Source: Tubulanus polymorphus (Eukaryota > Animalia > Nemertea). Taken from it: DNA of 64,000 bases. Where the stretch lies: NCBI RefSeq assembly GCF_964204645.1, contig NC_134032.1, forward strand, positions 11,210,275 through 11,274,274, read 5' to 3'. Shown here in pieces: positions 43,105 to 50,602 of the stretch (within the stretch, counting starts at the first letter, position 1; every line of letters begins with the position of its first letter). Below the pieces are notes generated by a model. The model made no database searches. It was not told the origin of the DNA and was given only the letters and a program-made list of their open reading frames with translations. A program made the position numbers and the translations under genes.

Positions 43105-43485
43105 AAATTGAACTTCACCAAGAACCTTAGTGTCTGATGTACCACAGACACTAAGGTGCGAATGACATTTTCTCGATACTCTTCAATCACTGTGACTTTA
43201 AACCACCAGAAATCCAGTTTCACCGAACCGATTGTCAAAAATAAACTCTCTTTACAAACCTCAAACATTCAGTTTTCTTATTAGTGTATTTATTCGGAGG
43301 AGCTTTGATTATATTCCGTGCATGATGCGATATTATTGAGGAAATTGCACAAACGACGCCATTTTCAACTTTTGAAATCAGCTCGATAGCAACGCCCTCG
43401 AGCGATCTATATTGTTACTCGGGAGACTCGTACGGGAGTGTACGGCATCGGAACAGACACTGGACGGGCTGATTTAATTCCTAGG

Positions 43486-45754
43486 ATGGACGAATCGTAC
43501 GTTGTCGGGGCGTTCACTGAAATAAAGAAATACCATAAATTCGATTTTAATTTAAAGAAAGAGCAGGTAAATCGAAATAATTTCATCCCGGCCTCAAACT
43601 ATTGTTTTGAAATTTTGTGATTAAAACCTAGCATATCGTGTAATACGGTGTTCATTAATTAAAACCGACGCGCCGATGTAGCAATTCTATGATTTGCAGT
43701 CACAAATTGGGACATTTGAAATCTATTTTCTTTCCACAAGGTAATTTTGTTAACCAAATTATGTGAGAAGAAAAGTACGTTCGGTGTGTTGCCAACTGGG
43801 TATGGCAAGAGTATGTGTTTTATTTTGGCACCGTTAATCATGGATAAGGTATAGACTTGGTTACTCGTTTCCATCCGATTAACAGTGGTCTACCCAGCAT
43901 TTGAAAAAAATTTCAAGGTTCACTCTTTACTTAGATAAATCCATCGAATGCACCACACATCGCATTGGTAGTAAGTCCATTAAGAAGCATCATGAAGGAT
44001 CAGGATGTGTTTTGCAGACGTCACGGAATTAAATCGGGCGTCATTACAAAGAAAGAGGAAATGACCGATGAAACTGTTTCTGGTGAATACATACCTTCAC
44101 AATATTATGCAATAATAATTCTGTCAAATGAGATTATGAGATTATGAGATAGAAATCTATGTATTGCAGATATTTACAATGGAAAACGAACGATTCTTTT
44201 TGCCAGCCCAGAAGTCTTGGAGCAACAGTCTTGGAGAAAAATGCTGTTAACCAAAAAGTACCAAGCAAGCTTGTGTCTATTATGTTTTGATGAGGCACAT
44301 TGCGTATCTAATTGGTAAACTGCCATCCAATATATATATATATATATATATATATATATATATATATATATATATATATATATATATATATATATATATA
44401 TATATATATATATATATATATATATATATATATATATATATATATACACAGGGGTGGAAACTTCCGTCCAGAGTATCGTTCTGTTTCGTCGTTGACGAGC
44501 CTTACGACCGTCCCCATTTTATGGTTGACAGCAACGTGTACGTCAAAGATGATTGCAGAGATCCTGAACGTTTTTAATTTTGAATTGAAAGATGTCGAAA
44601 TGGTAGCCGTAATCCCCGACAGGTAGAAAACAAAAGAAACAAAAGAAAGTAACATGTGTGCATATTATGATGAATTAAACAAACTATGATTTATTGTTGA
44701 AACTTTACATTACAGGCCGAATATTTTCCTGAATTTTAAAAGTGTCGCAAGAATGTCATTTGAAGAAGAATTGTCCTTGTATATAGAGCATTTATCAGAA
44801 AAACAGCTGGACGCTAAAAAATGCATCATTTACTGCAGGTCTGAGCTTTCTTGAAACTAGCCCTACGTTTTGATTAAAGATAATCATTATTATCATCAAA
44901 TGATGATAATAATGATTATCTTTAATCAAAACGTAGGGCCTTAAAAAGTATTAACAGATGCCCAATCGAATCATCCTAAGATAATTTTTTTCTCTCGCAG
45001 ATCAATAGACTGTGTGGGTAAGATTTATTTACATATGTTAGAGAGATTGGGCGCAAGAGCTTTTGTTGGCGAACATATAGTTAAAAACCGATTGATTGAC
45101 CAGTATCACAGCGTAGTAGATACAGATACGGAAAAGAGAATCTTGGATACGTTTCCGTTAGTAACGAGCACGATACGTTGTTTGATATGCACAGTTGCGT
45201 TCGGAATGGGTGTTCAGGTAATGAGCCGTCTCGGAGTGTCACGGTCTCAACTGTTCCATGCGAGGTTTACTGTACCAACCTGTACCAACGCGGTGGCATA
45301 AACATTCAATTGCCTTCAGGAAATCTATATGAAAAAAAACATATATTTGAAAGTAGATATCAAATATTTTTAGGTACCGGATATTGATATGGTCATACAC
45401 TGGGGAACACCAAAAGACATCCTGTCGTACTGGCAGGAAGTTGGAAGATGTGGGAGAGATGGACGAATCGCGGAAGGTCACTTGCTAGCGTTTTTGCCCT
45501 CTCTGAATAGAAAGCGGACAGAAGTTGAGATGATCGAAATGGTGAATCAAGTTAAAGATGGGAAGTGTCTCCGTTTAGCTGTTCTGGAAGCTCTTGTTAC
45601 TCCCGGAATGGACAAAAAATATCTCGAAACATTAAAGAATAGACCTAAATGTGGCAACGGAATATGCGGACTATGTAGCTGTTGCACAACGTGTAAAAAT
45701 TCATGTAAATGTAACGATATATCAGATGTAGATATGATGAATCTAAAAATCTAA
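43486..45754 (+). CDS. Transposon-encoded RecQ-like SF2 helicase, ~457 aa, 8 exons
   Basis: Exons 43486-43566, 43741-43848, 43935-44082, 44170-44314, 44452-44622, 44716-44838, 45001-45217, 45374-45754. Motifs [67 protein letters not shown]; Cys-rich C-terminus; no premature stops. Confidence 0.9.
44331..44446. repeat. (TA)58 microsatellite in helicase intron 4
   Basis: Uninterrupted TA run. Confidence 0.98.
44860..44939. repeat. Perfect palindrome, 39-bp arms and 2-nt spacer, in helicase intron 6
   Basis: GCCCTACGTTTTGATTAAAGATAATCATTATTATCATCA-AA-TGATGATAATAATGATTATCTTTAATCAAAACGTAGGGC. Confidence 0.95.
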
Positions 45755-46028
45755 TGAATATTGAATAGATTATCCCCCTGGTAGGCAACACTGGGTTGTA
45801 AAATTAATAGTAGAAGCTCTGCCTGTTATTCGCTCGTCACTCCAGGAATGGACGTCGAAAGTTATCGACGGAATGAAACGGACGGAATGCGCAAAAGGTG
45901 TAGCTGCTGCGAGGCTTGCAGGATTTCATGTGGATGATTGATAATTGATTTTTGATTTTTGAAATGAAATACTTTATGCTTCAAATATATAGATGTTGTA
46001 TATATGATGGCTCAAATATTGTAAATAA

Positions 46029-49000: not shown

Positions 49001-50143
49001 CTTGCTGCCTGCATCCACTTCGCCACATCTGAAGAGAATTGATTTCCTTCAAAAAACGAACTTTTCTGCAATTTCTAGAGTCTAGAATTGTTGACACTAC
49101 GAACCCGAAGCGGTTATCCGGTGTTTGTGAATTTCTATGAATAAAAATCACTAAAATGTTACTATTGAATGCTTGAGGAAAAAAAACAGCAAACTTCAGA
49201 TCTCATACCGTTTTCCTGCCATTAACGATAACAATATACTTGTTAATGCGGGCATTGATCCTTTGATAGCGCCGACTGTTTCAGACCACGAAAACTGTTC
49301 CATATTTTCAAGCGAGGCTTCGTCAAAAAGTGGCGATTTTGTTTGCATGAAGGCCTGCTTCTCTTTCTTGATGAGTATACTTACTACAGCAAGTAGCTGA
49401 ATAAATGCAACCTTACTCTTTTTTAAAAGTAACAATATCGCTCCTTTATAATTCGAGTGGCCGATCATTTTTTGGGCCTGGTGTCTGAAGTTTTTCTGGA
49501 ATTGATATAATATATGATATGTGTACATACCATTACATTTGATTTTAATCTAAGAACTATATAGCCCATTGGTCTTAGTCAATTTCAGAAAGGCCTGATT
49601 ATTTCAGGTACAATCTGAACTCAAATGAATAGTCTATCCTACCACAGAGATTTTTGTGGAAAAACCAGCAGCATCTCCTCCGCCTTGTTCAACACTTATT
49701 CGTTTTGGAAGCCTAGACGTGGAGCATTCAGGTGAATTGTGTAGAGATCGTTTTGTTCCCCGATTGAATACCGGTATCGAATTATTTCTAGACTGAATTT
49801 CAACTTGAAATAAACAAAGTTTTGCGAAATAAGATCGTGAAATGATTCACTTGATAAACATTTTTCTGTGTTTGAAAAGTAATTGATTAACTTATTTTGG
49901 AAACTCACCTTTGATCTCATTTAATTCTCTTGTTTTTTTACTATATGCTTCTAAAAGTTTAAAACATGTGTAACAAACGAATTCCTTTTCGGGGTGAAGA
50001 CAAAATCCGTATTCCAAGCAGACCCTTATTACTGAAAAACCCTTAGCAATCTCACGTGTTTTGTGGAATCTTTTCCACCCTTTCTGCTTAGCTTCGAAAT
50101 TGCCGCCGCAAAATGCGCACTCGGAAGGCGACGAAGGTGCCAT
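46029..50143 (-). CDS. Academ-type transposase with N-terminal CxxC...CxxC module and two internal PHD fingers, ~968 aa, 15 exons
   Basis: Exons 50143-49909, 49803-49643, 49549-49209, 49134-49002, 48922-48803, 48714-48681, 48577-48246, 48165-47911, 47825-47706, 47629-47431, 47329-47066, 46988-46761, 46686-46555, 46461-46324, 46243-46029; all phases compatible. Motifs WDN, HGDGMT, EFH, REGDG, H..KY, WNRTVN..G..G.N.PMD..NE..N, LF..IPGR.H. The exon 3 acceptor is ambiguous. Confidence 0.85.
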
Positions 50144-50602
50144 CTTTCAATAAACTACGGCAAAATACCACTCGACCGCATTGGAATCCCGGTCGGTTCT
50201 CTTGATTGACAGCCGGATGTTATTGTTGCGGGTTGCCACGTGACATTCTATCATCGGCTTGAACCGATTTTCAGATTCTAAATTGTCTTTCCTTTTTTCA
50301 TTTGAAAACCAATGCTACCTAATGGTGTTTTATCCTCAAACAAATATATTGAACAAACGCATGTTGTCATAAGGTTAGTGTAGATAGTTTATTTATCAAA
50401 ATCGGTTATTTACAAGCTGAGATATCGCAGTTTGAACACGGACAAAAAAGCCGACCAAATTCTGGTCGGCAACTGTACAGCGAATTTGAATGCACGCGTC
50501 TGGGTGGTTGGTTACACGAGGATCGTAGAGCGACGGAGATCACTGGTGGAGACAACCACTGCCAGTGCTGGGTGAAAAATTGAACCTGAACCCGGGCCTA
50601 AA

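Follow-up and report, generated by a model that had tools for sequence, protein, structure and literature searches.

The DNA analyzed here, referred to as the window, is a 64,000-nucleotide stretch of the genome of the nemertean Tubulanus polymorphus (contig NC_134032.1, positions 11,210,275 to 11,274,274 of the forward strand). It contains a DNA transposon, probably of the AcademH type, a 7463-bp insert (43114–50576) that is bounded on both sides by the identical 9-mer AAATTGAAC (43105–43113 and 50577–50585). The insert starts with TTCACC and ends with GGTGAA, and alignment of its two ends revealed an inverted repeat that is perfect over 6 bp and imperfect to ~20 bp. Two convergent genes lie within it, a RecQ-like superfamily 2 (SF2) helicase gene and a transposase gene, and their stop codons face each other at a distance of 274 bp. 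The main features of the locus are as follows, with each exon given in the direction of transcription.

43105–43113, unstranded: left copy of the 9-bp target site duplication, identical to the right copy
50577–50585, unstranded: right copy of the 9-bp target site duplication, identical to the left copy
43114–50576, unstranded: whole element, 7463 bp, flanked by the duplication; termini common to at least 40 short derivatives elsewhere in the genome
43114–43133, plus strand: 5′ terminal inverted repeat from the end alignment, 6 bp perfect and ~20 bp imperfect; first 11 bases the same in the derivatives
50557–50576, plus strand: 3′ terminal inverted repeat from the end alignment; last 50 bases with 0–2 differences from most derivatives
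43486–45754, plus strand: RecQ-like SF2 helicase gene, from its open frame, GT-AG introns and domain matches; exons 43486–43566, 43741–43848, 43935–44082, 44170–44314, 44452–44622, 44716–44838, 45001–45217 and 45374–45754
43792–43812, plus strand: Walker A motif PTGYGKS in helicase exon 2, from the translation and its alignment to the DEAD profile
46029–50143, minus strand: transposase gene, from its open frame, DUF6589 match and collinear homologues; exons 50143–49909, 49803–49643, 49495–49209, 49134–49002, 48922–48803, 48714–48681, 48577–48249, 48165–47911, 47825–47706, 47629–47431, 47329–47066, 46988–46761, 46686–46555, 46461–46324 and 46243–46029
48558–48560, minus strand: candidate first catalytic Asp, WDN motif, transposase exon 7; a conserved column that falls on the first strand of the modeled RNase H fold
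48037–48039, minus strand: candidate second catalytic Asp, GDG motif, transposase exon 8; invariant G367/D368 column of the homologue alignment
46577–46579, minus strand: candidate catalytic Glu, transposase exon 13; acidic (Glu, once Asp) in all homologues that reach this position
47205–47452, minus strand: PHD finger 1 of the ING/Yng1 type, split by intron 10; Cys4-His-Cys3, match of exon T11, with the aromatics of a cage for trimethylated lysine 4 of histone H3 (H3K4me3)
46960–47183, minus strand: PHD finger 2, split by intron 11; Cys4-His-Cys3, aligned with the PHD finger of the homologues, cage tryptophan replaced

Both gene models were built from stop-free segments of the DNA itself, from which the junctions were inferred, and the splice dinucleotides, phases and split codons were checked numerically. 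The helicase gene comprises eight exons and 457 codons; its seven introns are all GT-AG, the phases are consistent and no stop codon interrupts the frame. The transposase gene comprises 15 exons and 949 codons, likewise without a stop, and its 14 introns are all GT-AG. Transposase exons T2 and T6, the latter a micro-exon of 34 nt, have no support from homologues, and exon T15 has a second in-frame acceptor at 46285 besides the one at 46243.

All searches with the window proteins were run exon by exon rather than with the spliced proteins. Pfam scans of single helicase exons placed DEAD on exon 2 and Helicase_C on exons 7 and 8 in collinear order, with DEAD profile positions 9–36 aligned to the exon that bears the Walker A motif. 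All three matches score under the Pfam gathering thresholds, which is expected because single exons served as queries. When solved structures were searched, exon H8 aligned to WRN residues 832–943, covering motif VI and the zinc subdomain (E 1e-9), and more weakly to RecQ, BLM, RECQ4, RECQ5 and RECQ1, while exons H3 and H4 had no useful match in the PDB. The translation further contains a DEAH box and the motifs LTAT, AFGMG and QExGRxGRDG. The frame ends 15 codons past the Cys-rich motif, and the winged-helix (RQC) and HRDC domains are absent; because of this early end we call the protein RecQ-like and not a canonical RecQ. As judged from its sequence, it appears to be a minimal RecQ-like core consisting of both RecA lobes and the zinc subdomain.

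The transposase was recognized through Pfam DUF6589, which matched exon T8 (E 1e-8, profile positions 71–148) and, further along the profile, exon T12 (positions 257–313); most of the remaining exons gave weak scans. With exon T8 as query, a set of 1.84 billion representative proteins yielded 265 matches, mostly exon-sized fragments, together with full-length homologues from Ptychodera flava, Patiria miniata, Diadema antillarum, Strongylocentrotus, Branchiostoma lanceolatum, Mya arenaria and Mytilus coruscus. Each of the ten full-length homologues scanned has DUF6589 (E as low as 9e-39), and in six of these ten a PHD finger is nested within the DUF6589 span. Neither the window exons nor these homologues matched any other transposase model of Pfam, those for hAT dimerisation, P/THAP9 and MULE included. 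The window transposase exons are collinear with the full-length homologues and keep nearly all of their conserved columns. The exon encoding the N-terminal zinc finger also matches a segment of Branchiostoma lanceolatum (L032:8681–8845) that lies upstream of the annotated gene start, and the amphioxus annotation probably lacks its first exon.

The fold was examined on an AlphaFold model of a sea star homologue (P0136), not of the window protein itself, computed from a 16-sequence alignment (predicted local distance difference test, pLDDT, 78; predicted template modeling score, pTM, 0.71). Foldseek returned nothing below E 0.001, with the transposases of ISCth4, Hermes and the P element in its top rows. 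Structural alignment of the same model gave Z values of 8.4 for the P element transposase (359 residues aligned), 8.2 for Hermes, 7.4 for ISCth4, 6.4 for Transib, 6.1 for Tn5 and 5.8 for RAG1, and the model also aligns to the HIV integrase core. Fold matches 1–14 consist of DDE transposases or recombinases only, and their alignments cover the same region of the model. We take the protein to be a DDE enzyme with an RNase H fold into which a large helical segment is inserted, like the P element, hAT and Transib/RAG1 enzymes. The WDN Asp, the GDG Asp and the Glu of exon 13 are the candidate D-D-E triad suggested by the sequence, the third being the least certain.

Between the second Asp and the Glu, and thus within the predicted catalytic core, lie both PHD fingers. 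Exon T11 has its best match in the PHD finger of Yng1 (E 5e-8) and further matches in those of ING2, ING4, ING1 and ING5. The PHD fingers of Yng1 and the ING proteins are readers of H3K4me3, and the translation of PHD finger 1 retains the aromatic residues from which ING proteins build their methyl-lysine cage. In a structure comparison, the PHD finger of the P0136 model matched ING fingers bound to H3K4me3. The amphioxus homologue, one from a sea urchin and one of the sea star homologues share the tandem arrangement; the other homologues have a single finger. The anatomy given in the preliminary description of this DNA was thus borne out. The coordinates agree with a perfect 9-bp duplication around a 7463-bp insert with two convergent genes. 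Both frames are open across 21 canonical introns (7 plus 14), with all 42 splice-site dinucleotides intact. The RecQ-like helicase is upheld by the WRN match of exon H8 and the collinear DEAD and Helicase_C exons, and the double-PHD transposase by its two Cys4-His-Cys3 fingers and the match of exon T11 to Yng1 and ING proteins.

To see how the element is represented elsewhere, we searched the full assembly (268 Mb, 77 contigs) with the whole element. The matches were the element itself, one long partial copy of 97% identity on contig 10, a few fragments of ~77% identity and dozens of short elements. The short elements match only the first 252 bp (86–89%) and the last 248 bp (92–93%) of the window element; they are 626-bp non-autonomous derivatives, present in at least 40 copies on many contigs. 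A dedicated search gave 462 first-look candidates, and all 40 that were scored are full-length derivatives or nearly so. Nine derivatives are ~100% identical to the derivative used as query, and many of the 20 aligned copies are 99.7–99.8% identical to their own consensus. The small derivatives have spread through the genome very recently, and the mobility of the family is established. At one place (G000:C7:13093170–13094659) several 626-bp derivatives stand in tandem or nested, one of them inserted directly after the 3′ end of another.

Target duplications were counted in 20 family copies, including the window copy, with the termini fixed at TTCACC...GGTGAA and each length tested. The duplication is 8 bp and exact in 15 copies, 8 bp with one mismatch in one copy, and 9 bp and exact in four, namely the window copy and three derivatives; none of the 20 has a 10-bp duplication. 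Because every one of the 20 copies with the same termini has a duplication of its own, the duplication at the window element is not a chance repeat. The family makes 8-bp or 9-bp duplications, mostly of 8 bp. The preliminary description had proposed a search for near-identical copies with 9-bp duplications of their own. Other copies exist in the form of at least 40 derivatives, and each of the 20 family copies examined, the window copy among them, has its own duplication, mostly of 8 bp. Against the 9–10 bp expected of an AcademH element, the window copy and three derivatives have 9 bp and the other 16 of the 20 copies have 8 bp. The view that the element is young and possibly active gains support for the family from the ~100% identical derivatives, and the window copy itself is possibly active.

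The copy on contig 10 begins at the 3′ edge of the (AT)n tract in helicase intron 4 and lacks the 5′ end as well as ~490 bp of helicase exons 7–8. Its transposase gene has a stop codon in exon 3, has lost the acceptors of exons 5 and 12, and carries frameshifts in exons 12 and 15. It differs from the window copy by 1.7% in exons and 2.1% in introns, and this equal divergence indicates that it has decayed neutrally. Five further DUF6589 loci (G000:C8:3323933–3324382, C10:6539872–6540336, C2:17857510–17857743, C1:16675996–16676430 and C3:17674513–17674764) suggest that other Academ-like families are present in the genome.

A similar gene pair was found in other animals. The transposase and helicase genes lie tail to tail in Branchiostoma lanceolatum, where the neighbor gene is annotated with DEAD and Helicase_C; in Diadema antillarum, at two loci with different neighboring genes; and in Patiria miniata, where the helicase is unannotated and matches six of the eight window helicase exons in order. 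In Mya arenaria both genes are near each other, with the helicase upstream instead. Exon-level matches show that the window helicase exons are collinear with helicases adjoining DUF6589 genes in four other animals. The two Diadema antillarum loci have 20 kb in common around the pair at 99.7% identity, with TAACC ends in inverted orientation, and this 20-kb unit may be a larger composite element. We looked for a target duplication around the two Diadema antillarum copies and for terminal repeats at the Patiria miniata locus; no duplication was seen at the former, and no clear ends emerged in either case. Since the two genes have stayed together across phyla, we regard the helicase as most likely a cofactor of transposition and not as cargo that is simply carried along. 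Pairing of transposase and helicase and nesting of PHD fingers in the catalytic core are both conserved from the nemertean to echinoderms and amphioxus, which argues that both serve transposition.

On the whole, we consider it probable that the insert is an autonomous DNA transposon of the AcademH type, structurally intact and moving by cut and paste, with the helicase as a likely cofactor. In such an element, the two ING-like PHD fingers would lie within the large helical insertion of the DDE core. The 949-aa transposase would cut at the short terminal inverted repeats, its conserved N-terminal zinc finger probably binding the element ends, and would insert the element at target cuts staggered by 8 or 9 bp. 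The RecQ-like helicase might unwind or remodel DNA at the ends or in the strand-transfer product, and PHD finger 1 probably tethers the complex to H3K4me3 chromatin. A stronger version holds that the element still moves at present, that its ING-type PHD finger guides insertion to H3K4me3-marked promoters, the window copy lying 17 bp upstream of the start codon of an open reading frame, and that the helicase is an obligatory cofactor of a DDE transposase with an 8–9-bp stagger. In its entirety this version seems unlikely to us. If true, one copy and a 626-bp derivative would be enough to rebuild a natural cut-and-paste system that is guided by chromatin and assisted by a helicase. The flanks of 15 derivative insertions have GC content and CpG ratio at background (0.39–0.42 versus 0.39), and the duplicated 8-mers are 54% GC with no clear consensus.

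Several observations weigh against the reading of the insert as a working AcademH transposon. The window copy is the only intact copy in the assembly, and the other long copy is dead. Over ~250 bp, the derivatives match the ends of the window copy at only 86% (5′) and 93% (3′) identity, so another source may have mobilized them. A search with both flanks found no empty site for the window element in the assembly, which offers none because both flanks are unique apart from small repeats. All 21 splice junctions are predictions from sequence, and the Z values of the fold matches are middling. Membership in Academ was judged by published description, and the usual duplication of 8 bp (16 of 20 copies) falls outside the 9–10 bp given for AcademH in PMC10045372, with overlap at 9 bp.

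The likeliest alternative is that the window copy is intact by luck and inactive, a silent survivor, and that the burst of 626-bp derivatives was driven by a different autonomous element that is unassembled or lost. The single intact copy, whose nearest relative is dead, speaks for this alternative, as do the subterminal divergence of the derivatives and the five other DUF6589 loci. However, no other element with matching ends and a coding interior was found when the genome was searched with the element and with the derivative. Moreover, the outermost 50 bp are nearly equal in element and derivatives on both sides, with three differences at the 5′ end and mostly 0–2 at the 3′ end, so that a transposase recognizing the element should recognize the derivatives too. 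The catalytic and helicase motifs and all splice dinucleotides of the window copy are intact, whereas the 97% identical sister copy has at least five disabling lesions. We regard an inactive survivor as a real but minor possibility.

It is quite unlikely, in our view, that the element is not Academ at all and instead represents a separate unnamed superfamily or a deep P/hAT-like branch that acquired helicase and PHD fingers independently. In its favor, P and hAT elements are characterized by 8-bp duplications, and among solved folds those of the P element and Hermes transposases come nearest; kinship with Academ was judged by published description. Nevertheless, DUF6589 and PHD are the only Pfam models matched by the ten full-length homologues, none of which matches a hAT, P or MULE model. 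AcademH is described as combining a separate DEAD/Helicase_C helicase, a duplication of about 9 bp whose length varies by one base and, in one animal sublineage, a PHD finger, and the window element shows this combination. Circumstantially, the taxonomic distribution points the same way, since the homologues occur in bivalves (Mya arenaria and Mytilus coruscus) and DUF6589 is reported to be enriched in pathogenic fungi in a rust-fungus study, both being groups in which Academ is reported to be abundant (PMC10294476 and PMC5751038). This shared distribution makes the link between DUF6589 and Academ an indirect one, and the bivalve library in PMC10294476 has Academ-1 as its only Academ entries. 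On architecture and Pfam DUF6589, we hold the Academ assignment with good, if approximate, confidence; most of the remaining probability goes to a relative of the P/hAT-like group that has no name yet.

That two domesticated host genes happen to lie between chance repeats is extremely improbable: both frames are indeed intact and intron-rich like those of host genes, and there is a single full copy, but the termini are common to dozens of dispersed derivatives that each have their own duplication, a decayed second copy lies on another contig, and a homologous pair occupies two differently flanked loci in one sea urchin genome. The preliminary description had named the lack of other copies, together with synteny of the two genes across species, as the pattern to be expected of domesticated genes; instead, the genome contains other copies, and between species the pair is not in synteny.

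In addition to its genes and termini, the element contains four smaller features.

43124–43157, unstranded: subterminal palindrome with 13-bp arms and an 8-nt spacer; single-stranded DNA fold z = −3.4 versus shuffles
44330–44446, unstranded: (AT)n microsatellite in helicase intron 4; the contig 10 copy begins exactly at its 3′ edge
44861–44940, unstranded: 80-bp perfect palindrome in helicase intron 6, a reverse self-match, found in the contig 10 copy too
45833–45937, plus strand: degenerate duplicate of the segment encoding the Cys-rich C terminus of the helicase; direct repeat D3 with 240-bp spacing, translations compared

The subterminal palindrome begins ten bases inside the 5′ end of the element, and the 3′ end has no comparable structure (single-stranded DNA fold z = −1.3). 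At the second pair of its stem the element has C:G, 16 derivatives have T:A and three others show the mismatched C/A intermediate; an example from a derivative is found at L010:1133–1166. The C:G and T:A pairs amount to one compensatory change, suggesting that selection acts on the palindrome itself, which may serve as a binding site for a protein or as a hairpin substrate of the helicase. The 80-bp palindrome may be a tiny foldback insertion. The duplicate at 45833–45937 follows the helicase stop codon; it opens with LVTPGMD, continues into a Cys-rich tail and closes with a stop. Either a partial tandem duplication or an alternative last exon may account for it. Outside the element, an open reading frame with a start codon (50603–50779) lies 17 bp past the right duplication and runs up to a GT donor, and exons matching Pfam Glutaminase (60316–63557) lie 9.7 kb further on the same strand.

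To our knowledge, and in the literature searched, there is no bench study of a helicase-encoding cut-and-paste transposon. The element described here is not a new class; its value is that of a tractable example with an 8–9-bp duplication. It offers a complete parts list, with an intact autonomous copy and a short natural substrate that has nearly the same ends and has multiplied very recently, and clear targets for point mutations in the DDE residues, the Walker A lysine and the aromatic cage of PHD finger 1. It is thus a candidate for asking why some transposons carry a helicase, a good one and not an unprecedented one.

Elements of the AcademH kind were reportedly described by Kojima in 2020, and one animal sublineage is said to have a PHD finger in the transposase. 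Published accounts give AcademH a helicase of the DEAD/Helicase_C type (PMC10799480) and duplications of 9 or 10 bp, as against 3–4 bp for the nuclease-encoding AcademX (PMC10045372). The window element resembles AcademH in combining a DDE transposase gene with a separate SF2 (DEAD/Helicase_C) helicase gene, in a long target duplication that varies by one base, in its marine invertebrate host and, as regards the animal sublineage mentioned, in having a PHD-bearing transposase. It differs in that its family makes duplications of 8 bp (16 of 20) or 9 bp (4 of 20) instead of 9–10 bp, and in the two tandem ING-type PHD fingers of its transposase.

With the P element and hAT elements such as Hermes it shares 8-bp target duplications and, to judge from the best fold matches of the modeled homologue, an RNase H fold that a large helical insertion interrupts. 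Unlike these, the window transposase has no Pfam match to either group and no THAP, BED, GTP-binding or hAT dimerisation domain, and the element has a helicase gene and nested PHD fingers. Compared with the RecQ family (WRN, BLM and bacterial RecQ), the window helicase is a transposon-encoded protein of 457 aa without winged-helix, HRDC or exonuclease domains; it shares with them the DEAH box, the PTGxGKS form of Walker A, the motif VI arginine finger and, after it, the Cys-rich zinc subdomain. The RAG1/RAG2 recombinase couples a DDE enzyme of the same structural class (Z 5–6) to a PHD finger that reads H3K4me3. In RAG, which has no helicase, the PHD finger sits on the separate RAG2 protein, whereas in the window element it lies inside the transposase itself.

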